Source of the DNA: Tubulanus polymorphus
Taxonomy: Eukaryota; Animalia; Nemertea
Length of the DNA: 64,000 nt
Reading direction: 5' to 3'
Assembly (NCBI RefSeq): GCF_964204645.1
Contig: NC_134034.1
Coordinates: 3,737,814-3,801,813, forward strand
Shown: one piece after another, positions 1,715-60,596 of the stretch
Layout: each line of letters begins with the position of its first letter
How positions within the stretch are numbered: position 1 is the first letter of the stretch
Translations under genes and position numbers: made by a program
The notes under the pieces: model-generated
Databases searched by the model: none
What the model saw: the letters and a program-made list of their open reading frames with translations, nothing else
What the model was told of the DNA's origin: nothing

Positions 1715-1981
1715 TCAGTTTTGGCGTTTATTTTGTAATCAATACATTTCATAACTCGTATCTATTTTGGGATAAATTTTGATAATCATTTTTGAGAGAA
1801 TGTGCACTCAATTTAGCATCGAGGCTAGAGCGGTTGCCGGTCAATTCAATTCGATTCAATTATCGATAGACAAATCCAAAATATCTTCATTCATGCTGAA
1901 ATTAATATTATATTGGTTATTGTTGACGATATTAAGCCACACGGCATCAATAAACTTTCAAGTTAGTTTTTTTGTTTCTAG

Positions 1982-7711
<5,730 letters not shown>

Positions 7712-10806: not shown

Positions 10807-11898
10807 ATGATGAACAGCACCGCGTCAATATCAACCACGTCTTTGATCGCTGACCAGTGTCAAATCTGGCTGAGGCAGCCGTATCGATGGGATTATAAAT
10901 TCAGCGTATTTATCTATCTTTTCCTCTACGGACCTGTATCATTCTGCGGAATTCTTCTCAACAGTTTTACCATTTACGTATTGATTAGTTTGAAAAGTAA
11001 GGAAAGCTACTATCTCATAAACGCGCTCGCGTCTTCCGATCTCATGTACTCCTTAACCGTGTTCATACTGTATCCCCTGAGAACGATCCACGTCTATATC
11101 GCTGTAGGTCGTGTTGTATTCCATATGGATGACTGGCATTTCGGTTGGGAATACATCTACGTATTCAGGGCGTTATTCTATATGCTGCAATGTATTCGGA
11201 ACTGGGTCGTCATGTTGATCAGCATCGAACGATTCGTCATTGTTGTTTTCCCTTTACAATCGCGGAGGTTTTGGACGAGAAAAGTTGTCAATTCTGCGCT
11301 AGGATTCATCAACGTCGTATCTTTCGCATTTTACTTGCCATATTTTTTCCCTAAAACGAGATTTGGAGCCTTTTTCTGCAAAGATAGCCGCCTTTATACG
11401 GTTATGCGATTTGAACTGCTCAAATATTACACTAAAACTTCAATTCTCTTCAATTGGGAATATACAATGTCCGATTTTATTGGAACAACTTTTACGATTA
11501 TCATCCCTATGTTTTCACTGATATTCCTAAACTCGATTTTGATTTTAGTTTTACTTTTTCAGAGGATACGTCGTTCCAAAATTAGTGACACGACGACTCG
11601 GTCCTCGAACGAATTCAGAGTTCTGCGCATGGCTTTATTATTGGTTTTGATATTTTTCACCTGCGAATCCTTTATTTTTTTGGAGAAAGCCTCTTCACAG
11701 TTTGTCAAGTCGTTAGGGTATGAGTTTTTGCCGATGATTGGATGGACAAATGGGAGGTTTGCAAGCACCCTCGTTTACAGAAAGATAGCCATTGGAATGA
11801 CAGTCGTTGACTCGTGCGCTAATTTCTTTGCGTATTGTTCCACGAATGATAAATTTAGACAAAAAGCCCGAAAAATCCTAACTTGCGTTGAGCGGTGA
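10807..11898 (+). CDS. Intronless class A (rhodopsin-family) GPCR, FMRFamide/peptide-receptor-like
   Basis: 363-aa ORF with seven hydrophobic segments; GILLN (TM1), LASSD (TM2), ISIERF (DRY equivalent), IIPM (TM5), FFTCE (TM6), DSCANFFAY + FR (TM7/helix 8); N-terminal NST sequon. Confidence 0.92.
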   Translation: MMNSTASISTTSLIADQCQIWLRQPYRWDYKFSVFIYLFLYGPVSFCGILLNSFTIYVLISLKSKESYYLINALASSDLMYSLTVFILYPLRTIHVYIAVGRVVFHMDDWHFGWEYIYVFRALFYMLQCIRNWVVMLISIERFVIVVFPLQSRRFWTRKVVNSALGFINVVSFAFYLPYFFPKTRFGAFFCKDSRLYTVMRFELLKYYTKTSILFNWEYTMSDFIGTTFTIIIPMFSLIFLNSILILVLLFQRIRRSKISDTTTRSSNEFRVLRMALLLVLIFFTCESFIFLEKASSQFVKSLGYEFLPMIGWTNGRFASTLVYRKIAIGMTVVDSCANFFAYCSTNDKFRQKARKILTCVER

Positions 11899-41724: not shown

Positions 41725-42370
41725 TATGGCCTCCAATTTTACAAGGTTAACACACAAACAATATATACCATACGTCATGCATGACAAAACGAAAACTCTT
41801 CCTCAAAAACTGCATCTTTTAGAAAGTGAACATCTATCTTGGAGGGATCATGAATGAAGGAATGAACAAACGAACGAACAAACTCTCTCTTGGCAGGTTG
41901 AACCTAATGGCAGGCAAAGTATTTTTCTCGCTTGCCAGGGTTTCAAAGCTCACGCCAACAGAAACCTTTGCCGCATTAGCCTTCGTTCGTCTATTTCACT
42001 TCCCAATATATTTATATTTTTGGACAGACAGGTTCCCGCTCAAAAGGCACGTTTCCAATCCAGCAATGAATATTTGCCTTGTTATGTCGACAATCTCTAG
42101 GTGTTACCGCACTTCCTTTCGCGGCAAAGCTGCGCAATATTATCGACTTGGTCCGGTACATTAGGATTGGGTGTCCGTGCAATCTTGGCGTCATCCGCCA
42201 GGTTCGATTCCCAGCCGAATAATCGGCAGATACGACAAAAATCACGGAAAGTCACGGAAAGTTCGCAGTACACCAGCGCTCAACAGCAAGCAAAACATTA
42301 TCACTGGTGCATAGGTCTCGAATAAATGTAAATGGAATATTTATTTCGGCTTTTACATTATTTGTTTCGT

Positions 42371-43794
42371 CTAGTCATCGCACTGTTTTATTATTGGATT
42401 TACACAAACAGCCTGTATCTTACAACCAAGTCTGCCGTTACATTTACCAGATACTACGCATGTATTCTGGTCGGATTTCATTGCTGTCAATGAATAGGAA
42501 TCATCCTGCTGCCATCTGAAAAATTAAACATTCAAGATATTTGGATCGATTTGTTTGGAAATCGAAAGTATTATAAGTGAAATATTTGGTAAGCATATAT
42601 TAAGATATATTTTGGTATATTACGAGATCATTCTGAATCAGGGGACTCGGAGGCGTTTTCATATAGCTGCATCGAGCTTACGTAGCACCGGGAAAAGGAG
42701 ATGGTTCTAAATGGATTAAGTTAAATCTATCGACGAGGAGTGGTCGACCGATTCGACAGTCATCGAGTGGAGGAGAATGATATAAATACTCACGGGTTAT
42801 CTAAGCCGCAAGAACTGACGACGAAACCGTCGGGACATGTGATAGTCGGTGTTCTGGAATAGTCAGTCGTTTGGACAACGTGATAGAGAGTTTCACACGT
42901 GGCGATTGCCTGGAAAAGAAAACTATCCGTGAATGTATATCTATCTGAGTAAAGAAATACTACACTAGGTCTCCCATCTAGACCTATCACTGAAGTATTT
43001 ACTTGAACATGTATTTACTTGTACGCAACGTTTCGTATACACACACGCACAAACGCATATTGCGTGCAACACAAGTTGAATATGTAAGTACCTTGACTGG
43101 AGGTCTATTCAAGCTATGATTCACTCTACACATATTGTATCCGATCACTATGTTCGCATCGCAATCCATTTCCGAGGAGCAACTGCATCGGACGACGAAA
43201 GAACCTTCCGGACACGTGACCTCACTGATGGCGTCATCAGCAGTCGAAGTTTCTGGCCCAGTCTTTTCGACTATTACACCAAGCACGTCGCTCACGAACA
43301 GGATTGCTCAAATGAAAATGAGAAAATGTTTAATCGCTGTTTATAAAAGGCTCTATATTATTATCTTAAGAAACTGGCTACGTACCGGTACGTAATTCTT
43401 TTGAATCATTACTCGAAATTATTGCGTTAATATAACGGTTTAAGGCCACCCCCATCCCAATAAGATCGTAGTGTGGCATCTTATGTTAGTAAATAAAGTA
43501 GATAAAGAAACTATGACAGTAATGGAAAGAAGTTGAGGCAGTTTTAGGAGCTATTGTGTAGGTATAACCAGTCCGGCAATCCTCGCACAGCAGGTTTGTT
43601 ATCATGATGACATCATAAACTCTTTTTATGATGTTTTATGATAACCTTCAGATTATTGTTCAGTAGCGATTTGAACGGACTATACTGCTGCGCAGTCTGA
43701 GTGCCACCTGCCGTTCAAATCACCCGCCAGGAGAGATAACATTAAGTCTGCATGATCTATACATACCAATTATTATTCCGACAAGAAGTTTCAT
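42371..43794 (-). CDS. Secreted Cys-rich protein, 167 aa, two PCSK9-C-terminal/resistin-like modules (left copy); coding exons 43767-43794, 43092-43306, 42794-42909, 42371-42515; upstream exon ending at 44829
   Basis: Canonical splice sites, phases 1,0,2; signal peptide MKLLVGIIIAILFVSDVLG; VTCPEGSFVVRCSC...MCRVNHSLNRPPVKAIATC and ITCPDGFVVSSCG...NTC...CKIQAVC; 13 Cys; AATAAA downstream. Confidence 0.8.
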
Positions 43795-46700
43795 CTGAAA
43801 AGAACGTAAAACAATATAAGGACTAAATCACGATTGATAAATCACTCCCCGTGTCTCGCTCTCAAGATTCTGGACCCCTTTTGTAGAAAGAACCGGCATT
43901 CTTGAAATTCCGATTCTCCCGCTAATGGTCTACCAATTTTGGCATGGAGCAAGCGACCCAGCGTCACGACCGTTCACTACCGTTTTTGATTACGAGATAA
44001 TTCAGCTCATGATTCACTGATGTAATTTTGAAAACTGATTTGCTAAACTAACTTTTCCTTCCAACCCTCCTGTCATGACGCGTTATGATTAACTCACTCC
44101 TCGGTTATCATCGTTGAGAGAGCAGCTATTCCCCGTGAATTACCAACGGGCGTATACAACAACAGAAACTTTGGAAAACTAACAACAATCATTTTTCACA
44201 AAACTCTAGCGAGTATTACCGTTATTGACTAAAAATGCCCCGCGTGGCGCTCGACGGGTTGAGGGCGTTTAAAAATCTGTATTTGATACGCTTAATAGAT
44301 AATGATAAAACGTGTAATCGAGTAGACCATGACCTTGGTAGCTTTTGGAACTGCGATACATAGACCGCTGGCAAATTCAACGACACCGCAATTGAATGAA
44401 AAAAATATATAGAAAATAAAACTTTAAAGCAGCAAAATTGGTTATCAAATAGAGGGGATTTAGAAATTGATGGATTGCAAATCGTCGTGGATTTCCTGGA
44501 CTCGGTTCCATCACGGCGTCGCAGTTGGGCCCCGGTCGTTTGCGCTCGAACGCAACTACGAAAAGTATGTCAGCTTACTGTAGGCCGGAGTAGAACATGG
44601 GCAAAACTAGCCAGATACGGCTCGCGATGGTTCGTTAGACGTCGGGTATGATGAGCCGGTTATATTATGTCGAACGAATATAACGGCTACTGCTGGCCTA
44701 CTATAATGAGTAGTTAATATCGGATATAAGATATTTTTCTTGAATGAACTTATCTAATACACTCTTTAATTGAAATCTAACTTAGAAAGAACCGTTTATC
44801 TGGGCCTCAAAGAGCTCGAACTACTCACCGTGTGTTCGCTGGTTTCTCGCGTCTGCGGCAGTATGACCGTGACAATACAATTCATACGGTGGTACATCTC
44901 TTAAATTGTTAAAATTGTTTAAACAGCCCGCACACCAAGCATTTTATTATGTGGATTTTGGAAAATATCGAGTGTTTTCTGTCTGGACTGTTAAACATCT
45001 GCCGCCAATTATCATATTACATATAGGCCTATACGTAATCGATATTCACGTGAAATAAATGATTTAACAATTTCTAGCCGCCATTTTCTCAGGGTATTAT
45101 GTTTTCATTTCTCATAATAATTTCTCAAATTTGCAAATCTCAATGAGACGAGAATATGAAATTAAACATAGTATATTGTCACGAATCGTGTTTTGTGGGG
45201 TTTACTGTAGGGGGCGCAGCTGAGCTCAACTAAACCACTGACAAGTAGCTGATACACCTAGTTTCGTTGATGATGATATTTAGGTAAAATCTCGAAAACA
45301 TACTGACGTATGACTAGGTATTCTCCTATTCTATATTTACATTATCTACGGATATACATTATATGCACAGAATAAAGTTAATTCGATGGTTGTCGGACCG
45401 AAAACACTAAATTCAAAATACAACCGATAAAAGTGGAATGATGTGGTTCATTATTTTTTTTTTTGGCGCAAAATATAAGACTGTCTACAATTCTGCTGAT
45501 ATCAAAATGATGGATAACGCGAAGATTATGGATATACATACGAATCAGCGGGGTCAATTTTTCGACACAAGACGGCGATCTATTTTGTTTTCATTTCAAA
45601 TTTGCAATAATTCGATATGCGAGTGGTGTAATGTAACCTTTCTAGCACCCACAGAGAAACACAATGGATAATTTGCAGGTTGGTAGTAAAGCAGAAGTTG
45701 GTAGCTAGGGGTCAGATCGGTAGTGAGAATGTGTGATCTGTGTGCATTTTTGGCCAGCACACAGATCACGACAATCATTAGTCAATTTGGCAGGTTATAT
45801 TTTGCTAATGCGCAAGAAAAATAGCGCAGCGATAGCAATTCATGTTAACGCTATTTTGCCACTGCGGCATTATTACTGATTAGCTAATCTAGAAAATAAA
45901 GGAAAGTGTGGAGAATAGTGCGGAGTTATTCAGCAATTTTCAAGCGTAGCAAGTTTTCACTAGAACACCGAGGCTCGCGGAATGCTTTTGATAAGCCCAA
46001 TTTCAATCGTGAGAAGCATAAAGTTATTTCGACGAAAACATAGAAACTCAGGAACAAATATGAATATGTTTAATTCCGGATACATTGTTTTCGGAAATCA
46101 TGTTGCTCGTATGAGAAACGGGGAAACGATCGAAAAGATATTTCCGTCTCCTATTTTCAAGTTTCCCTGTGTCGTGTGCGTTGGGTCATGGGCTCTAAAA
46201 CGATCAGAGCAGTAATACAGGCACCATCAATATGCAGTCTGGAACCACCAACATGCAGACATTCACCATTTTCTTAACATAAAATGTTGTCGGTTCAGTT
46301 GCGGCGGCGAAAACTTGGTGACGAAAATGTATCGATATCTAATTAGCTACAAACGTTTGATGTTGAAATTTATAATGAAACGTTGAACACCAAAAACAGT
46401 GTATTATTGTATTATGAAAATGTTTTTTGCTTTGTATTTCATTTCTATTTCAAGAACAGGGGCCAGTTGCTCAACAGTTGGTTAAAGATAACTGGTGAAT
46501 GAATACCATTGTAAGACGCATAGTGTCATTGACTGTAGAAAACTCAGATGAATGTAGACCTTATTTACTGACGTTATATGTTAAATTCCACACGCGCTTT
46601 ATTGCCATATTGACCGCCACCAACCGCGCAAAACTATTGCAAATTTGAGAAATGAATATGAGAAATGAAAACAAAATTACCATAATATAATGGCGGCTAG

Positions 46701-46842
46701 CAACTGGTAAATGATTTATTTAACATGAATATCGAATACTGTAATGATAAATGACGGCAGATGTTTAACAGTCCAGACAGAAAACACTCGATAATTCAAT
46801 GTCATTTAGGTGCAATTCTCGCTCCAAATGAACAACAAAATC

Positions 46843-47024
46843 CACTTAAAATAAAATGTATGTAAAACTTGATAATAGATCGCGTGATCTAGTTGATACG
46901 TTCATGGTATAAGCGTTTGTGTGTGCTTAGCGCTCCCACGCACACGTGGAGGCCTTGTGTAGTGTGTTAAACAGCCCGCACGCGATCGATTATCAAGGCT
47001 TTACATTACATTTTATTTTAAGTG
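46843..47024. repeat. Inverted repeat (~45-bp arms) inside the spacer of the large inverted duplication
   Basis: CACTTAAAATAAAATGTATGTAAAACTTGATAATAGATCGCGTG ... CACGCGATCGATTATCAAGGCTTTACATTACATTTTATTTTAAGTG. Confidence 0.75.
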
Positions 47025-49455
47025 TAAAAGTACAAAACATGTAGACCCTCGAATCATATTGTTTCAATCTGATACAATTTCGATGATTTCATGCATTCAG
47101 AATAAGACTAACATTGAGAAAACTATTTACATTTCACGAACAAAATGCACGGGACAGGATACAATGCATTTAACAGGAAAAAGTAATATATTTTAGAACT
47201 GGCTCCGAACGTCCGTTTTATGTGTTACAGCATGACCGCCAAAATTCTCAATATTGTAATTGTTGTTTCGAAACTCCATTAATGGTGACGTAGTTGGTGA
47301 CTCACACAATAAATAACACAGTATTTGCCGATGTATAAAAGCTTTATTGTGAAAACTTTAATTTGCAGTATCAAAAATTCGCGGTTGGTGGCGGTCAATA
47401 TAGCAATAAAACGCGTGTGGAATTTAACATATAACGTCAGTAAATAAGGTCTACATTCATCTGAGTTTTCTACAGTCAATGACACTATGCGTCTTACAAT
47501 GGTATTTATTCACCGGTTATCTTTAACCAACTGTTGAGCAACTGGTCCCTGTTCTTGAAATAGAAATGAAATACAAAGCAATAAACATTTTCATAATACA
47601 ATAATACACTGTTTTTGGTGTTCAACGTTTCATTATAAATTTCACCATCAAACATTGGTAGCTAATTAGATATCGATACATTTTCGTCCCCAAGTTTTCG
47701 CCGCCGCAACTGAACCGACAACATTTTATGTTAAGAAAATGGTGAATGTCTGCAGGTTGGTGGTTACATGATCACACATTCTCACTACCGATCTGACCCC
47801 TAGCTACCAACTTCTGCTTTACTACCAACCTTCCAATTATCCATTGCGTTTCTCTGTGGGTGCTAGAAAGGTTACATTACATCACTCGCATATCGAATTA
47901 TTGCAAATTTGAGAATTGAATATGAGAAATGAAAACAAAATAGATCGCCGTCTTGTGTCGAAAAATTGACCCCGCTGATTCGTATGTATTTCCATAATCT
48001 TCGCGTTATCCATCATTTTGATATTAGCATAATTGTAGACAGTGTTATCAGTAAACCCCACAAAACACGATTCGTGACAATATACTACGTTTAATTTTAT
48101 TTTCTCGTCTCATTGAGATTTGAAAATTTGAGAAATGATTATGAGAAATGAAAAGAAAATACCCTAAGGAAATGGCGGCTAGAAATTGTTAAACCATTTA
48201 TTTCACGTGAATATCGATTACGTATATGTGTAATATTATAATTGGCGGCAGATGTTTAACAGTCCAGACAGAAAACACTCGATATTTTCCAAAATCCACA
48301 TAATAAAATGCTTGGTTTGCGGGCTGTTTAAACAATTTAAACGATTTAAGAGATGTATCAACGTATGAATTGTATTGTCACGGTCATACTGCCGCAGACG
48401 CGAGAAACCAGCGAACACACGGTGAGTAGTTCGAGCTCTTTGAGGCCCAGATTAACGGGACTTTCTAAGTTAGATTTCCATTGAAGAGTGTATTAGATAA
48501 GTTCATTCGAGAAAAATATCTTATATCCGATATTAACTACTCATAAGTAGGCTAGTAGCCGTTATATCCGTTCGACATAAAATAACCGGCTCATCATACC
48601 CGACGTCTAACGAACAATCGCGAGCCGTATCTGGCTAGTTTTGCCCATGTTCTACTCCGGCCTACAGTAAGCTGACATACTTTTCGTAGTTGCATTCGAG
48701 CGCAACCGACCTGGGCCCAGCTGCGACGCCGTGATGGAACCGAGTCCAGGAAATCCACGACGATTTGCAATCCATTAATTTCTAATTCCCCTCTATTTGA
48801 TAACCAATTTTGCTGCTTTAAAGTTTTGTTTTCTATATATTTTTTTCATTCAATTGCGGTGTCGTTGAATTTACCAGCGGTCTATGTATCGCAGTTCCAA
48901 AAGCTACCAACGTCATGGTCTACTCGATTACACGTTTTATCATAATCTATTAAGCGTATCAAATACAGATTTTTAAACGCCCTCAACCCGTCGAGCGCCA
49001 CGCGGGGCATTTTTAGTCAATAACGGTAATACTCGCTAGAGTTTTGTGAAAAATAATTGTTGTTAGTTTTCCAAAGTTTCTGTTGTTGTATACGTCCGTT
49101 GGTAATTCACGGGGAATAGCTGCTCTCTCAACGATGATAACCGAGGAGTGAGTTAATCATAACTCGTCATGACAGGAGGGTTGGAAGGAAAAGTTAGTTT
49201 AGCAAATCAGTTTTCAAAATTATTTTACATCAGTGAATCATGAGCTAAATTATTTCGTAATCAAAAACGGTAGTGAACGGTCGTGACGCTGGGTCGCTTG
49301 CTCCATGCCAAATTTGGTAGACCATTAGCGGGAGAATCGGAATTTTAAGAATGCCGGTTCTTTCTACAAAAGGGGTCCAGAATCTTGAGAGCGAGACACG
49401 GGAATTGATTTATCAATCGTGATTTAGTCCTAATATTGTTTTACGTTCTTTTCAG

Positions 49456-50868
49456 ATGAAACTTCTTGTCGGAATAATAATTGGTATGTATAGATCATGC
49501 AGACTAAATGTTATCTCTCCTGGCGGGTGATTTGAACGGCAGGTGACACTAAGACTGCGCGGCAGTATAGTCCGTTTAAATCGCTACTGAACAATAATCT
49601 GAAGGTTTTGCGCTGTAAAAAAGAGTTTATGATGTCATCATGATAACAAACCTGCTGTGCGAGGATTGCCGGACTGGTTATACCTACACAATAGCTCCTC
49701 AAACTGCATCAACTTCTTTCCATTAATAACTGTCATAGTTTCTTTATCTACTTTATTTACTAACATAAGATGCCACACTACGATCTTATTGGGATGGGGG
49801 TGGCCTTAAACCGTCATATTAACGCAATAATTTCGAGTAATGATTCAAAAGAATTACGTACCGGTACGTAGCCAGTTTCTTAAGATAATAATATAGAGCC
49901 TTTTATAAACAGCGATTAAACATTTTCTCATTTTCATTTGAGCAATCCTGTTCGTGAGCGACGTGATTGGTGTAATAGTCGAAAAGACTGGGCCAGAAAC
50001 TTCGACTGCTGATGACGCCATCAGTGAGGTCACGTGTCCGGAAGGTTCTTTCGTCGTCCGATGCAGTTGCTCCTCGGAAATCGATTGCGATGCGAACATA
50101 GTGATCGGATACAATATGTGTAGAGTGAATCATAGCTTTGATAGACCTCCAGTCAAGGTACTTACATATTCAACTTGTGTTGCACGCAATATGCGTTTGT
50201 GCGTGTGTGTATACGAAACGTTGCGTACAAGTAAATACATGTTCAAGTAAATACTTGAGTGATGGGTCTAGATGGGAGACCTAGTGTAGTATTTTGTTAC
50301 TTAGATAGATATACATTCACGGATAGTTTTCTTTTCCAGGCAATCGCCACGTGTGAAACTCTCTATCACGTTGTCCAAACGACTGACTATTCCAGAACAC
50401 CGACTATCACATGTCCCGACGGTTTCGTCGTCAGTTCTTGCGGCTTAGATAACCCGTGAGTATTCATATCATTCTCCTCCACTCGATGACTGTCGAATCG
50501 GTCGACCACTCCTCGTCGATAGATTTGACTTAATCCATTTAGAACCATCTCCTTTTCCCGGTGCTACGTAAGCTCGATGCAGCTATATGAAAACGTCTCC
50601 GAGTCCCCTGATTCAGAATGATCTCGTAATATACCAAAATATATCTTAATATATGCTTACCAAATATTTCACTTATAGTACTTTTGATTTCCCACAAATC
50701 GATCCCAATATCTTGAATGTTTAATTTTTCAGATGGCAGCAGGATGATTCCTATTCATTGACAGCAATGAAATCCGACAAGAATACATGCGTAGTATCTG
50801 GTAAATGTAACGGCAGACTTGGTTGTAAGATACAGGCTGTTTGTGTAAATCCAAAAATATTACAGTGA
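49456..50868 (+). CDS. Secreted Cys-rich protein, 164 aa, two PCSK9-C-terminal/resistin-like modules (right copy); coding exons 49456-49483, 49943-50157, 50340-50455, 50733-50868; upstream exon ending at 48421
   Basis: Same structure as the left copy; 12 Cys; ends VCVNPKILQ-TGA. Confidence 0.8.
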
Positions 50869-51340
50869 GATGACAAGACGAAACAAATAATGTAAAAGCC
50901 GAAATAAATATTCCATTTACATTTATTCGAGACCTATGCACCAGTGATAATGTTTTGCTTGCTGTTGAGCGCTGGTGTACTGCGAACTTTCCGTTATTTT
51001 TGTCGTATCTGCCGATTATTCGGCTGGGATTCGAACCTGGCGGATGACGCCAAGATTGCACGGACACCCAATCCTAATGTACCGGACCAAGTCGATAATA
51101 TTGTGCAGCTTTGCCGCGAAAGAAACACGGATGCACCTAGAGATTGTCGACATAACAAGGCAAATATTCATTGCTCGATTGGAAACGTGCCTTTTGAGCG
51201 GGAACCTGTTATATAAATATATTGGGAAGTGAAATAGACGAACGAAGGCTAATGCGGCAAAGGTTTCTTTCTGTTGGCGTGAGCTTTGAAACCCTGGCAA
51301 GCGAGAAAAATACTTTGCCTGCCATTAGGTTCCCTTTCTA

Positions 51341-54300
51341 GTTTCAGTTTCAGTTTAGTTCATTCACTCCACAAGTTATAATAACATTGCACAGAGCACA
51401 AAAGTAGCGCATAGATTACAGCATATTACAAAAAATATAATGATATTGTTAATAATAATTATATTTATAATAATAACAATTATGATTATAGTAAAAATAA
51501 TAATAATAGTGATAGCAGTAATATAATACTTATAATAATAATAATTATAATTATAATGAAATTATAATGCAAAAGATGAGGCGGAATTGTAGTATCGAGA
51601 TCCGATAATTATACACTATATTAGGTAAATGATTTGATACCTTTTTTAATGAATATCGCCAGATTGAGCAAAGTTTTACCTCTCGAACAGAAAAGGTTAT
51701 GTAAGGTATTTTCATTGGGATGTCGCCAGTAGTAACTAGGTATAAATTTGTTTCTCAGGCTTTGAAAAAAGGGACATACTAAAAGAAAATGGAATTCGTC
51801 TCCAGTTGCTGCCAAATGAAATTTCTGACAAATTCTATGCTTTCGCTCAATCTGGCGATATCTACCGATTTCAATAGGTAACTTATGGTTCGAGCATCTG
51901 AATCGACACAAGGCTAGGCGGAGACTGGGGGGTAATTTGGTCAGGTACTCTTCGAATTTAAAACAGTTTTTAAAACGCTTGTAGGTTAAGCAAATTTGGT
52001 GTTTCGTTGACCTTGGAGTACCAGCGTTGTGCTTACTGATCCATGAGCCTCTGTTTCAAAATACTATAAAGATAATTAGCACTGGGTACAGATTGAGTTT
52101 CCCTAGCGTGGCCGAGACCATTTTTTACAAGAATATTTTTAACATTAAGAATCCAAGCGTTACCCCGACCGCCGTGGTGCGTTTGATAGATATATTTGTA
52201 CATAAAAGAAGAGAAATGTTCAGTCTGATTTATCAATTTTGTCCAAAATTTAACGATTCTCAATTTAACATAAATCTCTAAAGGATAGCGCCCAAGCTCA
52301 CCGTAAATGAATACACTAGACGTAGACCTTTTCAATCTGAGTAAATATTTAAAAAATTGTAGCTGAACACGCTCGAGTACCTGTGTGTTCTCATATCCCC
52401 AAATTTCACAGCCAAACAGCAATATAGGTAATACCATACTATCATAAAGTTTCAAGGTCAGATCTAGGTCTAATGAATGTTCACTTGAATTTTTTAATAC
52501 AAAAAATACCGCTTTCATAGCTTGTTCCGAAAGAGTTTTACGACATTGTGTGAACGATCCAGTGTATGAAAAGAGAACACCCAGGTACTTGAATTTATCA
52601 ACTATTTCTAATTTGTGACCATTAATGTAAAATTCTGGTAAGATTCTTAATCTTCTTTTCGAGAAGATGATGACCTTTGTCTTGTCATTATTAATTGAAA
52701 GTTTCCATTCTTGGCAATATTCACAGAGATTATCTATAAGTTTTTGGAGTCCCTCGGGCGAATCACTTAATAAAACCGTGTCATCTGCATACATGAGAAT
52801 TAAAAGTTGGAACCATGGCACATTGTTAGGTCCGAAAAAATTTAGGGTTGGACTATTTCGTTCTAATAGATAGCTTTCCAGGTCGTTTAAAAAGATAGAA
52901 AATAATATAGGAGACAGATTTTCACCTTGTCTTACCCCTAAATAGCTATCAAAAAAATCTGACATTTTATTATCGGAAAAAACACATGAGTTGATACCTT
53001 GATACATTTTATGTATAACGTTAAGTACTTTGCCAGTGACACCACTGTTAATTAGTTTGTGCCACAAGGCCTTTCTCCAGATAGAGTCGAAGGCTTTTTT
53101 ATAATCTATGAAAATACAATAGAGTTTTTGATTGTTGTTTAGGAAGGTGTCGACTAGAGCCTTGAGGGTAAATACGTGGTCCATAATGCTATGATTCTTC
53201 CTGAAACCGGCCTGGTTCTGTAGCAAAAGATTGTTAATTTCTAAGTACTCGGTAAATTCTTTCGTTGATAATACTAGTGAATAGTTTGCCAATATTGCTT
53301 AAAAGGGTGATTCCCCTATAATTATCGGGGTCCTTTTCGCTACCTTTTTGTTTAAAGAAAGGGACAATGATGCCTTTCAGCCATGACTCTGGAATAGTGC
53401 CTGTATCGAGAGCATTATTAAAAAGGTTTACTAATAAAGGTAGTAGTGATTCTTCGGCACTTTTGAGGAACTCATTCGGTATCCCATCGATACCACAGGC
53501 CTTGAAATTTTTTTGCTTTTTAATGCATTTTGAGATTTCTTCCCTAGAGAACGGTTGATTCAAAGGGCCATGGTCAAAGTTACTACCTATAAATTCATCA
53601 ACGTTATTTAATAGAGGTTCGTTTCCGTTTAAAACTGGGCTTTCATTCATAGATTTGAAATGTTGGAAGAGATCGGAGTTCGGAACTTTGCACGAATTGT
53701 TATCTGATTTTTTGAATAGTTTCCAAAATGTATGAGGGTCAGAGTTTGATAGTTGTCTAATTTTCCTGCTAAATTCTTGCCTTTTGTCGTTTTTCCATTT
53801 GTTAATAGTTTTTTTTATATTTACGAAAGGCACGATTCATTTCAAAATGATTATTTCTAGTGCGCAGGCTTAGGTACAAACGTTTGGCACGGCGATAGTC
53901 AGACCTCGCTAGTCTAACTGTTACGTTGTTAGTGGCTTTAACGGCTGACCGCGGTTTGGATTTACGTTTCAAAACCCGCTTACCCATGACGTTACCAGCT
54001 GTGGTTAACGATATATTACAAAGCCTGTCGTTGGCCTCGTTTGCATTTAATGTGTTGTTTGCGAGACATTCACTGATACTATTGAGAAGAGGCATTTCCC
54101 TTTCTAAGGACTGAACAAATTGATCCTTCAGATCTGGCTTCCAATTAACTTTCTCTTGACAGTTTTCACTGGCGTCCACAGAGGCCAGGTCTGGAATTTC
54201 GATCTTAAAACTGAACTCTGCAATTAGACCACTGTGGACGTCAGAGAAAAGCTTTTCGAATTCTAAAACCTGGAACAGTCTTACAGAACTGATCAAATGA

Positions 54301-55607: not shown

Positions 55608-58600
55608 TAATGATAATTCAAAATGGCGGCACTGATAGATTGTTTGTCGGGTCGCTCTACAAACTCGGACCATTTTTAGTATAGCTTTGGTCAGGCGAAG
55701 TGATTGAAAATGGATATAAAACGACCATTAACCGTTGTATGTTTCGGCACGAGATTTTCAGAGGAGGATATATTGAGTAAGCTTGGAGAAAACACAAAGC
55801 ATGTTCGAGCCATTCAGTTTTTGAAGAATGGTGAGTGCAGAATTACTTTTAACAATTTGGAAGCTATGGAAAACTACATTACAAGTGGTATAAAGATCAG
55901 AGATCGTCAAATTAAAGCGTGCAAAGTTGACGAATTAATTGATATAACGAACATAACTATTAAAGACGCGCCGGTTGAGCTTTAGGACATCTCACAGATA
56001 AGAAACTACATGGTCCTATTGGGGAATACATCTCTAAATTATTATCTCTCTTTGAAATAGACTCTGATAATAATTAACACGAAACTGCTTTTATTCTTGT
56101 TATATTAATGTAAAATGTTTATGTTTTGTAAATACTATTTGTAAATATCACTCTGTGCACCTCGACCCGAAAGGGTGTAAGCAGTACAATAAAGAGTTTA
56201 TTGAATTGAATTGAATTGAATTGTTCATTGTTAATCAGCTACAAAAGTATGGCAACGTAGTAACCGGTTCACTGCGAAGAGGCGAAATTAAAGACACCGA
56301 AATTTTTAATGGATCTATCTATGCGAAACTGTCAAACGTAAAAAAACATTATACCCGTGGAGACTAAGTTTGGAAGATTTGAAGTAAGACTTTTTTGCGA
56401 CAATAACAAAACACAGTGCAAACATTGCGGTGACACTGATCACCCGTATTTCAGATGTTTACTGAAAACTAGAAAACTTTGTTTCAAGTGTAAATCAGCT
56501 GATCATATGGCTTATGATTGTCCGTACGGCATAATTTGTTATCATTGTCGTGAAGATGGTCACAAAAAATCTGAATGCCCAAAAATTCGAAAAATTCAAA
56601 AACGATTGAATTACGATATAGACGAAAATAGTATCAGTGATCACCAGTCAGACACAATTCAAAACTCAGCGCGAGTTGAATTTACAACAACGCCTCTTGT
56701 TGTTGACAATCCGACCGCGGATTACCTGATCATAGGAGACTCTAACTGCAGGCGCCTTATATTCACTGACCTGCCCAGTAGTATTCATGTTGACAGTTTG
56801 CCAGGTGCAACCGCTCATGGTATTGATCAACAATTACTCAAGCTTAACCCGAAATTAGACAGTAGCCTAGTAAAACGTGTTATTTGTCATCTAGGAACAA
56901 ATGACATTTCTTTAAACAAGGACGATAACGATCAAACTATTCTCGACTTATCCAAAGCTACAAATACACTACTTACTAGATTTCCAAATTCTGAAATTCA
57001 TGTATCCAGTATCCTCCCCCGAAGAGGACGGAGCAAGACAATAATGGCACTTAATGAATCGGCAACGGCCGTCAATAACTATTTACAAAAACTGTGTAAT
57101 AGCGACGAAAGACTATTTTATATCGACAATGATGAAAAGTTCCGCCCTAACCAAGCTGGTGTTACACGAGCCCTCTTCGATTCCATGGATAAGAGTGGAG
57201 TTCATTTAGGAATAGACGGAGCCAAAGAACTGACAGCCACATTTCTGAATGCATTTGCTTTACCGTCGGGTAGAAACAAGAAAAGATCTCATAGTCAGAC
57301 GTCACCTGCTATCATCAGTCCTAGTTGTAGCCAACTGACTAAAAAGGACAGGATTATTTCTGGTGACTCACCTGTTACTGCAGTTTGAAGTGCATTCTTA
57401 TCCATCAATCTATGACTAACAATCCATCTTCATCTTATAATTGTCAGTACTTTGATGAAAATAACTTTGAATTCGATAAAAGTCAATTTTCAATTTGCAC
57501 TTTTAATATCCGAAGTTGCAACAAAAATTTTGATTCTTTCACTGACTACATCAATTGTATAAAATCCGATTTTTCTATCATAGGACTTACTGAGACTTGG
57601 AGTAATGATAATGCCCATAACAATAATCTTTATAAACTACCTGGCTACAATAGTATTTTTAAAAGCCGCTCGAATTATGTAAAGGGTGATGGCGTTGCCC
57701 TTTATTTCAAAGATGATTACGAATCTATAATACGCCCAGATCTTTCTGGTAAGAATGAGGTATTTGAATCTCTCTTTCTTGAAATTATTTGTAAGAGTAA
57801 AAAGAATAAGATTATTGGTATTATATACAGACCTCCGGGGCTAAGTATATCTACTTTTTAGTTGAATTTAATTTACTATTAGACAAGCTAAATAGGGAAA
57901 GAAAAGATTGTTATTTGATTGGTGATTTTAACATTGATTTACTTCAATCAGAAGTTCATAAGCCTACTGAATCATTTCTAGATAATCTGATAGCTTCATC
58001 CTTTTACCCACTTATTGATAAACCAACCAGGGTGACTAATAATTCATGTAGCCTAATTGACAATATTTTTTGTAATAATGTTGAAAATGTATTTAATTCG
58101 GGCATATTATGTACAGATATTTCTGATCATTTTCCAATTTTCACAATGTGTGATCAACGTAAACGTGTCTGCAATAATTGTACTTACTCAACTAGAAACT
58201 TTAGTGATCATAATATTGATAGATTCTATAGGAGCTTAATAGCGTGTGATTGGTCGGCTATTTATAATGAAAATGACCCACAAAGGTCGTATACTGTATT
58301 TATTTCTAAATTTACTCATTTATATGATACATGCTTTCCATTTATCAAACGCATGAACGCAAAAACCAATAAGTCTAAACCCTGGTTAACTACGGGCTTG
58401 TTAAACTCTATTAAATATAAAAATCACTTATATAGAAAACACTTTATAATTCAGATATTGCTTTTAAATCCCGTTATTCAGAATATAAGCGATTTTTATC
58501 ACGTTTATTAAAAGCTGTTGAAAAAGGTTACTATGATACTCAGTTATTTGGTGTAAAGAATGATATGAAAGCTACGTGGAAAATCTTAAAAACAGTTATT

Positions 58601-60596
58601 GGAAGTAACTCCGTCAAAGAACAACTACCAGCTTCCTTTAAGCTAAACAACGTAACTGTCAGTGGAAGTTTAAACATTGAACATGAGTTTAATACTTTTT
58701 TGTTAATATCGGACATCGTTTAGCAAATATGATCCCCGAGTCTGAAAAACATTTCAGCTTTTATTTAAATCGTCCTAATAATGAAAACTTCTTTTTCTTC
58801 CCAACAAACTCGCTAGAAATTGATGAAATAGTAAATAAATTCTCTGGAAATAAAGGTATTGGCATTGACGGGATCTCTATGAAAATAGTTAAAAGAATTA
58901 TTGATGTTATAAAATATCCACTTACTCATATATTCAACAATAGCCTTCATTCTGGAGTGGTCCCTGCTGAACTCAAAATTGCTCGGGTGTGCCCTCTGTA
59001 TAAAAAGGGTGAATGCGATTCCTTTGACAATTATCGACCCTTATCTATTTTACCATGTTTTTCTACGATACTAGAAAAACTCGTTCATAAACGTTTAGTC
59101 GCTTTTTGTGATAAATTTGAAATTATTGATCATAACCAATTTGGATTTAGGAAAAATTACTCAACATTAATGGCATTAACTCGTATATCTGATGAAATAG
59201 CAGCCAATATTGACGAAAGAAAAACAACGATTGGAATATTTTTGGATTTGTCTAAAGCTTTCGACACAGTAAATCACCGTATTCTTTTGGATAAACTTAA
59301 TCATTATGGTATTAAAGGCACAGCACTTAATTGGTTTCAAAATTACTTAGAAGGTCGCAAGCAAATAGTCCAGATTAAAGATACTAATTCTACCGCTTTA
59401 GATATTGATATTGGAGTACCACAGGGCTCCATTTTAGGTCCATTACTATTTATACTATACATAAACGACTGTACTCGTGCATCTGATATCCTAAAGTTAA
59501 TTTTATTTGCTGATGACACGAATGCTTTCTATAGTGATCATCTCGTTGACCGCCTGATAAAAACGATCAATACTGAACTTTCGAAACTAGTTGTTTGGTT
59601 TTGTGCCAACAAGTTATCAATTAATATTAGTAAAACTTATTATATTATATTTAGTAAAACTTTTGTTGGTAATACAAAGATTTATATCGATGATCGTAAA
59701 ATTAAACGTGTCCACACTACCAATTTTTTGGGGGTTTTAATAGATGAAAAACTGTCATGGGATGATCACATAAAATCTGTATGTAAAAAAGTGTCACGTT
59801 GTGTTGGCGTTCTTCATCGTGTTAAACACAAGTTGTCTTCCAATTCTTTACGTACTTTGTATTTATCCTTAATAGACCCATATCTTCAGTATTGTAACAT
59901 TGTTTGGGGAAGAACTTCTGATAATAAACTGCATCCATTAACAATTCTACAAAAACGTGCTGTCCGTTTGGTCAGCAAATCCCATTATTTAGAACACACT
60001 GATCCAATTTTTGCTCGGTTAAATATACTTGAAATTAAGAATATTAACAAACTCCAACTAGCTATTTTTTTACATAAATTCGTCAATTCAAAATTGCCTA
60101 GGACCTTTCACAACTATTGGAACTTCAATTATCAAATTCATAGTAAACCTACGCGTAATAGATTTAGAATTAGATTGCCTTATTTCAGAACTGTAACTAG
60201 AAAATCTTCTGTCAAAATATCCGGTCCCCTATTATGGAATACTCTATCTGAATCAATTCAAACTATTCAAAGCGAACCTGCCTTTAAGCGTACCTACATG
60301 AAATCATTATTCAACACTTTGTAAATTTTCATTCTATACAAACCTATGTTAATGTGTAATATGTGAAACTTTTTTTCTTTTCTTTTCGCCTGTTAATTAC
60401 TTGTGTGCATGATGTGTGAGTGTGATGAATGTGGTGTGGATGCTTCTGGGTGATACGGCTTAGATAGACTGTTTCAGTCTCTCCGTGTAGCCCCATTATC
60501 CTGTTACATTTTTTTTCGTCTAATCATACTTATTATATCGTTCAATAATGTAACATCGTAATGAAAATAAATTTCAATTTCAATTTCAATTTCAAT
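55608..60596 (+). mobile_element. Apparently full-length CR1/L2-group (Crack/Daphne-like) LINE, disabled; ORF1 ~55710-57388 (RRM-like + 3 CCHC + SGNH esterase), ORF2 ~57385-60324 (EN + RT), (TTTCAA)n tail
   Basis: EN motifs FNIRS, LTETW, IYRPP, GDFNID, IDNIF, SDHFP; RT motifs LDLSKAFD, GVPQGSILGP, FADD; stop at 57859 and frameshifts near 58445 and 58700; TAGA at 55604-55607 and 60597-60600; empty site visible in the left arm (~41490). Confidence 0.95.
55983..56222 (+). mobile_element. Short LINE 3' fragment nested in ORF1 of the CR1/L2-group element
   Basis: Interrupts ...DAPVEL / LFIVNQLQKYGNV...; ends AATAAA + (ATTGA)n. Confidence 0.75.

Follow-up and report, generated by a model that had tools for sequence, protein, structure and literature searches.

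Do two small genes lying head to head in the genome of the nemertean Tubulanus polymorphus encode secreted proteins whose only domains are modules of the type seen in the PCSK9 C-terminal domain (CHRD) and in resistin, and what might such proteins do? PCSK9 is a human cholesterol regulator and resistin a hormone. The PCSK9 tail and resistin are medically important and usually discussed as vertebrate features, yet little is understood of how they evolved or of what they do biochemically in general.

Gene models within the inverted duplication

We rebuilt from the sequence two intact genes in divergent orientation at 42371-50868 of the window, that is, of the whole 64,000-nt stretch of DNA that was analyzed, and both ends of this interval are exactly the stop codons of the left and the right gene. 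A repeat search of the window placed them inside the arms of an inverted duplication, with the minus-strand gene in the left arm (~41900-46628; repeat pairs I1-I14) and the plus-strand gene in the right arm (~47380-51332). The arms are 94-100% complementary and flank a unique spacer of 751 nt (46629-47379, delimited by the repeat search and bridged into both arms by DNA contigs) at the centre of the palindrome, bearing out the arrangement described in the first-pass annotation. We read the locus as an inverted duplication of recent origin that carries two divergently transcribed paralogs.

Exon 1 of the right gene (49456-49483, plus strand) supplies the ATG and the first 9 signal-peptide residues and ends in a phase-1 donor. 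Exon 2 (49943-50157) encodes the end of the signal peptide, a conserved lead-in (G-P..S...DDA.S) and module 1 through its fifth Cys; exon 3 (50340-50455) encodes the last strand and sixth Cys of module 1 and the start of module 2 (C-P-D-G...C-G), and exon 4 (50733-50868) the remainder of module 2, with four Cys and an I-Q-A-V-C motif, followed by the stop. The equivalents of exons 1 and 2 are fused in one ORF, comprising leader and module 1, in the paralog L009. The left gene is read from the minus strand, with exon 1 at 43767-43794 (signal-peptide start), exon 2 at 43092-43306 (module 1), exon 3 at 42794-42909 and exon 4 at 42371-42515, where the stop lies three codons past that of the right copy and a 13th Cys is added. 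These four-exon models give products of 164 aa (right) and 167 aa (left), all introns are GT..AG with pyrimidine-rich acceptors, and each copy keeps its reading frame, 8 of 8 splice sites (upstream intron included) and the 12 scaffold Cys.

Both genes are present in RefSeq, the right one as LOC141912242 and the left one as LOC141912308, each labelled "uncharacterized". The right 164-aa model is identical to residues 24-187 of XP_074659566.1 (P0122), and residues 56-167 of the left model are identical to XP_074659653.1 (P0084), a truncated 112-aa RefSeq model that begins at Met56 in exon 2. The splice joins of the rebuilt and RefSeq models agree exactly and the stop codons are shared. The coding sequence of the right RefSeq model starts in an additional upstream exon (48353-48421, plus strand) with an in-frame ATG, encoding 23 aa before a GTGAGT donor; the left counterpart (44829-44897, minus strand) differs by one residue and has the same donor. 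Each gene may thus have a fifth coding exon; alternatively, the upstream exon may belong to the 5'UTR, as is probably the case for the right copy. The earlier models of four coding exons and 167 and 164 aa therefore stand, except that they overlooked the upstream exon with its in-frame ATG, and the genes, noted earlier as missed by the ORF track, are not absent from public annotation, where both lack a name and the left one has a truncated model.

Pfam searches of the full RefSeq product of the right gene found no Peptidase_S8 domain, and a six-frame search of the genome found none on contig C10, its matches being confined to C1, C3, C5 and C6. Together with the agreement of the RefSeq stops, this upholds the view that the genes stand alone and are not pieces of a larger subtilase gene. 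The protein has no protease domain, prodomain or third module.

Fold and homology of the modules

Both proteins start with M-K and ~17 hydrophobic residues (mean Kyte-Doolittle 2.3), and the right and left copies contain 12 and 13 Cys, six per module, as expected from the earlier reading of a signal peptide followed by two Cys modules. The mature part of ~145 residues is predicted to form two six-stranded, disulfide-rich beta-sandwich modules. We modelled the mature protein (P0122:43-187) with AlphaFold2 at a pLDDT of 94.1 and a pTM of 0.87, and the model is all-beta except for a four-residue C-terminal helical turn, the mature protein opening directly with a beta strand. The top PDB matches were all PCSK9 C-terminal domains (Z 16.6, rmsd 2.0-2.3 Å), with 126-131 residues superposed at 21-22% identity and model residues 1-145 lying on PCSK9 456-607 (M1+M2). 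The structure prediction thus returned the two-module match, and in the predicted model modules 1 and 2 pack together like PCSK9 M1 and M2. Resistin and RELMβ matched module 2 at Z 6.7-7.4, and the next unrelated folds scored Z 3-4. The paralog P0006 gave an equivalent fold and structure-search outcome, and an ESM Atlas shape search gave a TM of 0.80 to the PCSK9 cluster.

At the level of sequence, the connection runs through intermediate relatives. An exon-2 profile matched P0001 at E 2.8e-29 (HMMER), a protein that carries Pfam PCSK9_C3 at 1.3e-17 and PCSK9_C1 at 2e-16; across P0001, P0005 and others these two domains were found at E 1e-17 to 1e-34. The family profile (A4) aligned with the bridge modules (A6) in hhalign at 99.3% and E 2.6e-20, and the bridge profile in turn matched human PCSK9 459-527 (M1) at E 6e-11. 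PCSK9_C3 was present in 37 of 112 HMMER relatives at a threshold of E 1e-3.

Direct searches stayed below significance. PCSK9_C3 matched two stretches of P0122 at 14.8-16 bits (E 0.014-0.033), under the 26.7-bit cut-off, and Resistin matched it at 11.4 bits (E 0.5), under the 25-bit cut-off, where the curated Pfam gathering cut-offs are 26.7 / 31.3 bits for the PCSK9_C1 / PCSK9_C3 families and 25 bits for Resistin. The best Resistin score in 15 family members was E 0.012. Paralogs P0006 and P0012 had no Pfam match at E 0.01, and the six exon translations searched singly had none even at E 10; introns split the modules. A phmmer search of exon 2 against the PDB returned resistin only, at E ~3 through the C-P-E-G..V..C-S-C motif, and the family profile found nothing significant there, the top match being PLP1 APCbeta at E 0.54. 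The profile check was accordingly divided, with direct Pfam scores below cut-off and a significant two-step chain to PCSK9 M1. We conclude that the modules share true homology with those of the PCSK9 CHRD and, at a greater distance, with the head of resistin/RELM; it is very probable that the window proteins are, in structure and descent, of the CHRD/resistin module type.

A divergent family and the putative role of the pair

Module exons were found at 42 or more loci in the Tubulanus polymorphus genome, mostly in tandem arrays, of which there are several, which answers the earlier question of family size. All 13 paralogs inspected were intact, with at least 12 Cys and six Cys per module retained. 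The dN/dS ratio was 0.25-0.7 in old paralog pairs and ~1 or higher in young pairs. Among other Lophotrochozoa, comparable two-module proteins are present in a second nemertean species, a brachiopod, a bryozoan and a chiton, and the partner domains of relatives include PAN, WSC, C-type lectin, EGF, fn3, chitin-binding and GH10. A word-index protein search with the exon-2 ORF found no homolog, the index being too insensitive for this family; the same search gave 2 matches for P0006 and 5 for the family alignment. No contigs encoding P0006 or P0084 were found once the records of this genome were left out. The PCSK9_C3 HMM had no match in the six-frame genome, an uninformative result, since the controls were silent too. 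Our literature searches on stand-alone CHRD/resistin-like proteins in invertebrates yielded nothing relevant. To call this an undescribed system, as the first-pass annotation did, overstates the case; the genes represent a divergent family, without a name so far, within a known domain.

The best overall explanation, to which we assign a probability of roughly 0.78, is that the genes encode duplicated secreted two-module homologs acting as extracellular binding proteins. The proteins would be exported and would act as non-enzymatic extracellular binders, with a rigid disulfide-locked scaffold carrying a variable surface. Four observations lead to this view: the conservation of 12 of 12 Cys, a high dN/dS, the extracellular partner domains of relatives, and a fold with known binding roles, namely in the PCSK9 CHRD, resistin/RELM and the APCbeta domains of perforin-like proteins. 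Counted against this explanation were the dS of 0 between the copies, which also fits relaxed constraint, the shifted stop, odd 13th Cys and truncated RefSeq model of the left copy, the sub-threshold Pfam scores of the window protein, the acidity of the mature pair, and the lack of any sequence of the locus in the one candidate RNA run. As the most likely specific role we tentatively propose a part in recognition or defence within secretions, for example mucus, the proboscis or body fluid, and the proteins may include ligands or antimicrobial, mucus or venom effectors. A cationic antimicrobial or membrane-attack mechanism was rejected for this pair on account of the acidic pI of its mature proteins (4.9); most paralogs have a pI of 8.2-9.3. 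The idea of a homo-oligomer in which further chains would take the place of the third module was set aside as too speculative.

Instead of a working pair, one or both copies could be young, silent or decaying, so that the family would be real but the pair non-functional, an outcome that we regard as unlikely. It would account for coding differences that are non-synonymous in 9 of 9 cases (dN 0.023, dS 0), for an exon divergence of 1.8% that is close to the intron divergence of 3.1%, and for a left copy that has lost the ancestral stop position, gained an unpaired Cys and is represented in RefSeq merely by a 112-aa truncation; moreover, the single candidate RNA run lacked sequence of the locus, and three DNA-like runs contained no splice joints. 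However, the frames, splice sites and scaffold Cys are intact in both copies, and dN/dS is also near 1 in another intact young pair, as fits a diversifying secreted family. The 5' exon of the right RefSeq model, with its canonical donor, would also be easier to explain through transcript evidence than through ab initio prediction. It is less probable still that the palindrome is an assembly artefact in which two haplotypes were joined head to head, leaving one gene per haploid genome. Allelic divergence in marine invertebrates does span the 2-3% seen between the arms, and Logan contigs merge both variants into mosaics, so that alleles and copies are indistinguishable there. Against this, short-read DNA contigs link the unique spacer to the right arm in two samples, and a joint in X1 from 46606 to 47403 on opposite strands is consistent with the spacer-to-left-arm junction; other contigs at the junctions are X1 record 1 (46764-47441) and records of X2 and X3 (47319-47524). 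The left arm also has two additional insertions of ~270 nt and ~500 nt, and word depth in X1 was 44-54 in the arms and 37 in the spacer contig, the direction expected for two copies, although this is a weak measure. A 30-letter insert in one contig joint was not found in the window sequence.

Least probable, and only barely credible, is convergence, by which an unrelated family would have arrived at a generic small disulfide-rich beta sandwich. Small Cys-rich beta folds are recurrent, and no direct sequence search of Pfam or the PDB, whether with the window protein, single exons or the family profile, reached significance. Yet the two-step sequence chain is significant, PCSK9_C3, PCSK9_C1 and Resistin are the sole sub-threshold Pfam families for the window family, and a Z of 16.6 stands against 3-4 for unrelated folds, with both modules matched in the mutual orientation of M1 and M2.

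These results show that in a protostome the PCSK9-tail/resistin module occurs on its own, as a predicted secreted protein with two modules and no protease, and they reveal a large, rapidly diversifying family that is unrecognised by current domain libraries and unnamed in public annotation. Its members offer a small system (~15 kDa, six predicted disulfides) for asking what the module binds and may be a new class of protein in nemertean secretions. As Pfam already records both the domain and its presence in other invertebrate proteins, the advance is incremental and does not amount to a new category. A more speculative proposal, improbable when its three parts are taken jointly, is that free two-module CHRD/resistin-fold proteins form a class of secreted effectors or recognition proteins that is old, extends across Lophotrochozoa and is massively expanded in nemerteans (at least 42 loci); that the PCSK9 tail and vertebrate resistins could have been recruited from such a stand-alone state; and that they could be a new protein of ribbon-worm defensive mucus or proboscis secretion binding microbial or prey surface molecules. 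Traits cited for the nemertean expansion are charge-switching paralogs and the dN/dS near 1 in young pairs.

Comparison with known systems

The window proteins share with the PCSK9 CHRD (Pfam PCSK9_C1/C2/C3) a homologous module, the fold and M1-M2 packing, six Cys per module, C-P-x-G-x-x-V-x-x-C at the module start and A-I-A-x-C at the end. Unlike PCSK9, they lack the prodomain and the subtilase domain, and they have two modules in place of the three that pack with pseudo-threefold symmetry in the CHRD, with nothing matching M3. The PCSK9 CHRD is His-rich, whereas the window protein has 2 His in 145 residues; the window modules have an early C-x-C and a single terminal Cys, whereas PCSK9 has a terminal C-C. 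They also differ in falling below the Pfam cut-off and in being stand-alone protostome proteins of 15-16 kDa from a family of dozens of genes. Resistin/RELM proteins (FIZZ; PF06954; PDB 1rgx, 1rfx, 1rh7) are likewise small, secreted and Cys-rich, their head fold matches module 2 over ~60 residues, and resistin clusters were second and third nearest by language-model features (0.77-0.78), which serves as a lead only. In contrast, the window proteins have no N-terminal coiled-coil tail, which in resistin drives trimer/hexamer assembly, carry two tandem modules per chain where resistin has one trimerising head, and are missing the 10-Cys signature.

The direct HMMER relatives are multidomain PCSK9_C proteins of invertebrates and protists, which share the D-D-A-x-S lead-in before the first Cys and gave an Atlas shape match of TM 0.81. 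Examples include mollusc proteins with GH10, CBM_4_9 and PCSK9_C1, and PAN-, WSC- or lectin-linked forms. These relatives have enzymatic or adhesive domains attached and often three to seven modules, whereas the window proteins are made of just the two modules and have diverged too far for Pfam to recognise them. The APCbeta domain of apicomplexan perforin-like proteins (5ouo, 6d7a, 7pln) resembles them in its beta-rich repeated modules (Foldseek E 1e-3) and was the top, non-significant PDB sequence match of the family profile; however, the structures match only weakly (Z 5.3-6.1, rmsd 5.5 Å), and APCbeta has three repeats set on a MACPF pore-forming domain.

Divergent gene pair in an inverted duplication

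Script splicing of the window yielded 2 intact genes, each with 4 coding exons. The plus-strand gene, here the right copy, comprises exons at 49456-49483, 49943-50157, 50340-50455, and 50733-50868 and encodes 164 aa, and its minus-strand paralog, the left copy, comprises exons at 43794-43767, 43306-43092, 42909-42794, and 42515-42371 and encodes 167 aa. Every intron in both copies has GT..AG boundaries and a pyrimidine-rich acceptor, the genes are divergent with both 5' ends facing the spacer, and the span 42371-50868 ends exactly at the 2 stop codons. The exhaustive HMMER search, along with cluster look-ups, surfaced RefSeq counterparts for both genes. XP_074659566.1 (P0122, LOC141912242, 187 aa) reproduces the right model letter for letter with 23 preceding residues, and XP_074659653.1 (P0084, LOC141912308, 112 aa) equals residues 56-167 of the left model. 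An independent annotation therefore places the same joins between exons 2, 3, and 4 and, in the right copy, between exons 1 and 2. The first-pass annotation had proposed 2 intact 4-coding-exon genes of 167 and 164 aa, and the rebuilt models with their concordant RefSeq joins bear this out.

The 23 additional residues are encoded by an upstream exon (48353-48421, plus strand) that is also present in the left copy (44897-44829, minus strand). Each version of the exon has an in-frame ATG and a GTGAGT donor and is joined to the acceptor immediately ahead of the leader ATG (at 49456 in the right copy). The RefSeq coding sequence of the right copy begins in this exon, giving a 187-aa product with an internal signal peptide. 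Because the paralog products and models begin at an M-K-F/L-L-V leader, and paralog L009 carries leader and module 1 within one ORF, the downstream ATG (49456) is the likelier start of the right copy. The leader consists of M-K followed by about 17 hydrophobic residues and precedes a mature protein of about 145 aa (15.7 kDa) that has a pI of 4.9 and one N-glycosylation sequon. The right copy has 12 Cys and the left copy 13, the stop of the right copy being replaced by Cys in the left, which adds 3 residues and an unpaired 13th Cys.

The pair lies in an inverted duplication (41900-51332) that the repeat search of the window resolved into 14 collinear inverted-repeat blocks, 91-100% complementary and mostly 94-98%, around a unique spacer of 751 nt (46629-47379); the left arm is approximately 0.8 kb longer than the right because of 2 insertions. 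The sequencing runs matching the locus are DNA-like, with k-mer contigs covering introns and showing no splice joints. These contigs merge the 2 arm variants, bridge the spacer-to-right-arm junction in 2 samples, and in run X1 include the opposite-strand joint expected for the spacer-to-left-arm junction. The junction-bridging contigs and the large indels between the arms argue against a foldback or haplotig artefact and support the duplication proposed from the sequence.

Several segments of the arms and introns (46600-46756, 47385-47541, 48641-48797, and 49112-49425) have contig word depths 10-300x those of neighbouring sequence in the DNA runs and are short high-copy repeats, probably MITE-like. 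Contigs of the DNA runs X1 and X3 also join 49489 to 51020 with 30 foreign letters between, a 30-mer absent from the window; this joint could reflect a degenerate third copy or a deletion allele that has lost exons 2-4. The right arm is bordered by retrotransposon ORFs at 51621-53292 (minus strand), 56357-57388 (plus strand), and 58729-60324 (plus strand), 2 of them reverse transcriptases (RVT_1, E 1e-31 to 1e-33) and 1 a zinc-knuckle and GDSL-esterase ORF1-like protein. Elsewhere in the window, an intronless 363-aa ORF (10807-11898, plus strand) encodes a 7TM receptor domain of the rhodopsin family (Pfam 7tm_1, E 7e-11).

Homology to the PCSK9 C-terminal domain

The exons searched singly against Pfam gave no match, and exon searches against PDB sequences returned resistin as the sole match, at E ~3. 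With the whole RefSeq product, Pfam gave sub-threshold PCSK9_C3 (16 bits, E 0.014, both modules) and Resistin (E 0.5) and nothing else. A profile (A2) built by translating 17 paralogous exon-2 sequences of the genome, searched against 1.84 billion representatives, matched 113 proteins, and a Pfam scan of the matches at E ≤ 1e-3 identified PCSK9_C3 in 37/112, PCSK9_C1 in 25/112, and Resistin in 2/112. The 2-module family alignment matched canonical-looking bridge modules, relatives linking the family to PCSK9, with an hhalign probability of 99.3% (E 2.6e-20), and the bridge-module profile in turn matched residues 459-527 of human PCSK9 (E 6e-11). The proposed profile relationship is thus below cut-off for direct Pfam comparison with PCSK9_C3 and Resistin, whereas the profile chain to human PCSK9 is significant.

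Structure prediction pointed the same way. The AlphaFold2 model of the mature protein (P0122:43-187, 23-sequence alignment) had a pLDDT of 94.1 and a pTM of 0.87, and in a PDB structure search with this model the top 29 entries were all PCSK9, with resistin and RELMβ next. The best 22 PCSK9 entries aligned over 120-132 residues with Z 14.8-16.6, rmsd 2.0-2.5 Å, and 21-24% identity, residues 1-145 of the model aligning with PCSK9 456-607, that is, modules M1 and M2 of its Cys/His-rich domain (CHRD). Module 2 of the model matched resistin and RELMβ at Z 6.7-7.4, and the model matched APCbeta, the membrane-binding domain of apicomplexan perforin-like proteins, in PLP1 at Z 5-6, with unrelated folds scoring no higher than Z 4. 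The paralog P0006 (57% identical) gave the same structural picture, and the PCSK9 cluster ranked first in an ESM Atlas shape search (TM 0.80). The profile search, the chain to human PCSK9, and the predicted structure agree, so the original reading of a stand-alone, 2-module, protease-free member of the PCSK9/resistin fold is correct: the window proteins are disulfide-rich, non-enzymatic, signal-peptide-bearing 2-module homologs of the PCSK9 CHRD.

Family expansion and possible role

Tubulanus polymorphus is a palaeonemertean, and its 268-Mb genome has 17 places that match exon 2; a profile search raised this number to at least 42, which group into arrays on contigs C10, C1, C6, C8, and C11. 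Two further intact family genes, both on the minus strand, lie 3-11 kb past the end of the window (1721-2960 of place L018, G000:C10:3801814-3811813, and 4897-6180 of place L023), one of them being RefSeq LOC141912243 (P0012); the window pair therefore belongs to a 4-gene local cluster. Tandem arrays of module-1-like exons of the same superfamily were located at C6:6025603-6064876 (10 exons), C8:12142494-12171422 (7), C11:12461503-12480449 (5), and C1:31261071-31274889 (4). In all 13 inspected paralogs, the 3 exons of the mature protein are retained, the frames are open, and 12 or more Cys are present. The dN/dS ratio was 0.25-0.7 among older paralogs and 0.96 in 1 young pair; for the window pair, dN is 0.023 and dS 0, leaving the ratio undefined. 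The window copies (42371-43794 and 49456-50868) diverge by 1.8% in exons and 3.1% in introns, with 9/9 coding differences non-synonymous. Positions that distinguish the copies include 49966, 50082, 50139-50140, 50779, and 50855-50868.

The closest out-paralog, L019 (G000:C10:3459000-3468999; 1653-2000, 3587-3760, and 4237-6007), has an exon 2 without the hydrophobic leader. The same strand carries, further upstream, a galactose-binding-like exon of the F5/8 type C (Pfam E 1e-6), together with a ShKT-like Cys-rich piece that has no Pfam match, and L019 may be a lectin-fused family member.

Same-size 2-module relatives, all labelled 'uncharacterized', were identified across Lophotrochozoa in Lineus longissimus (Nemertea), Lingula anatina (Brachiopoda), Watersipora subatra (Bryozoa), and Liolophura sinensis (Mollusca), and unnamed ones in marine metatranscriptomes. 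In longer relatives, the modules adjoin PAN, WSC, C-type lectin, EGF, fn3, somatomedin-B, and chitin-binding domains, and in mollusc relatives, GH10 xylanase-like enzymes.

The window proteins would be exported and then bind something extracellular, with a conserved scaffold presenting a fast-changing surface. The PCSK9 CHRD binds protein partners, resistin/RELM proteins bind membranes and receptors, and APCbeta binds membranes. Recognition or defence within secretions would be in keeping with these binding roles of the fold, with the relatives' extracellular partner domains, which are often related to carbohydrates or adhesion, and with the tandem-array expansion and high dN/dS. In mature form the window pair is acidic (pI 4.9), unlike most paralogs, which have a pI of 8.2-9.3 (LOC141912102 is one of the basic ones), and a direct cationic attack on membranes is therefore unlikely for this pair.

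Comparison with known systems

Both the module and its presence in non-convertase invertebrate proteins are already known from Pfam, and both genes are in RefSeq. New are the placement within the CHRD/resistin superfamily of a family that is unnamed and invisible to Pfam, the minimal stand-alone 2-module architecture, and the scale of the expansion in a nemertean; full-text literature searches returned no description of such stand-alone proteins. Peptidase_S8 had no Pfam match in the RefSeq product or anywhere on contig C10, in line with the protease-free reading and contrary to exons of a larger subtilase gene. Membership of the resistin family is ruled out by the lack of a coiled-coil tail and of the resistin Cys signature and by the score below the Pfam cut-off. 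Unlike the CHRD of PCSK9, the window proteins are not His-rich, and they have 2 modules, whereas that domain has 3.
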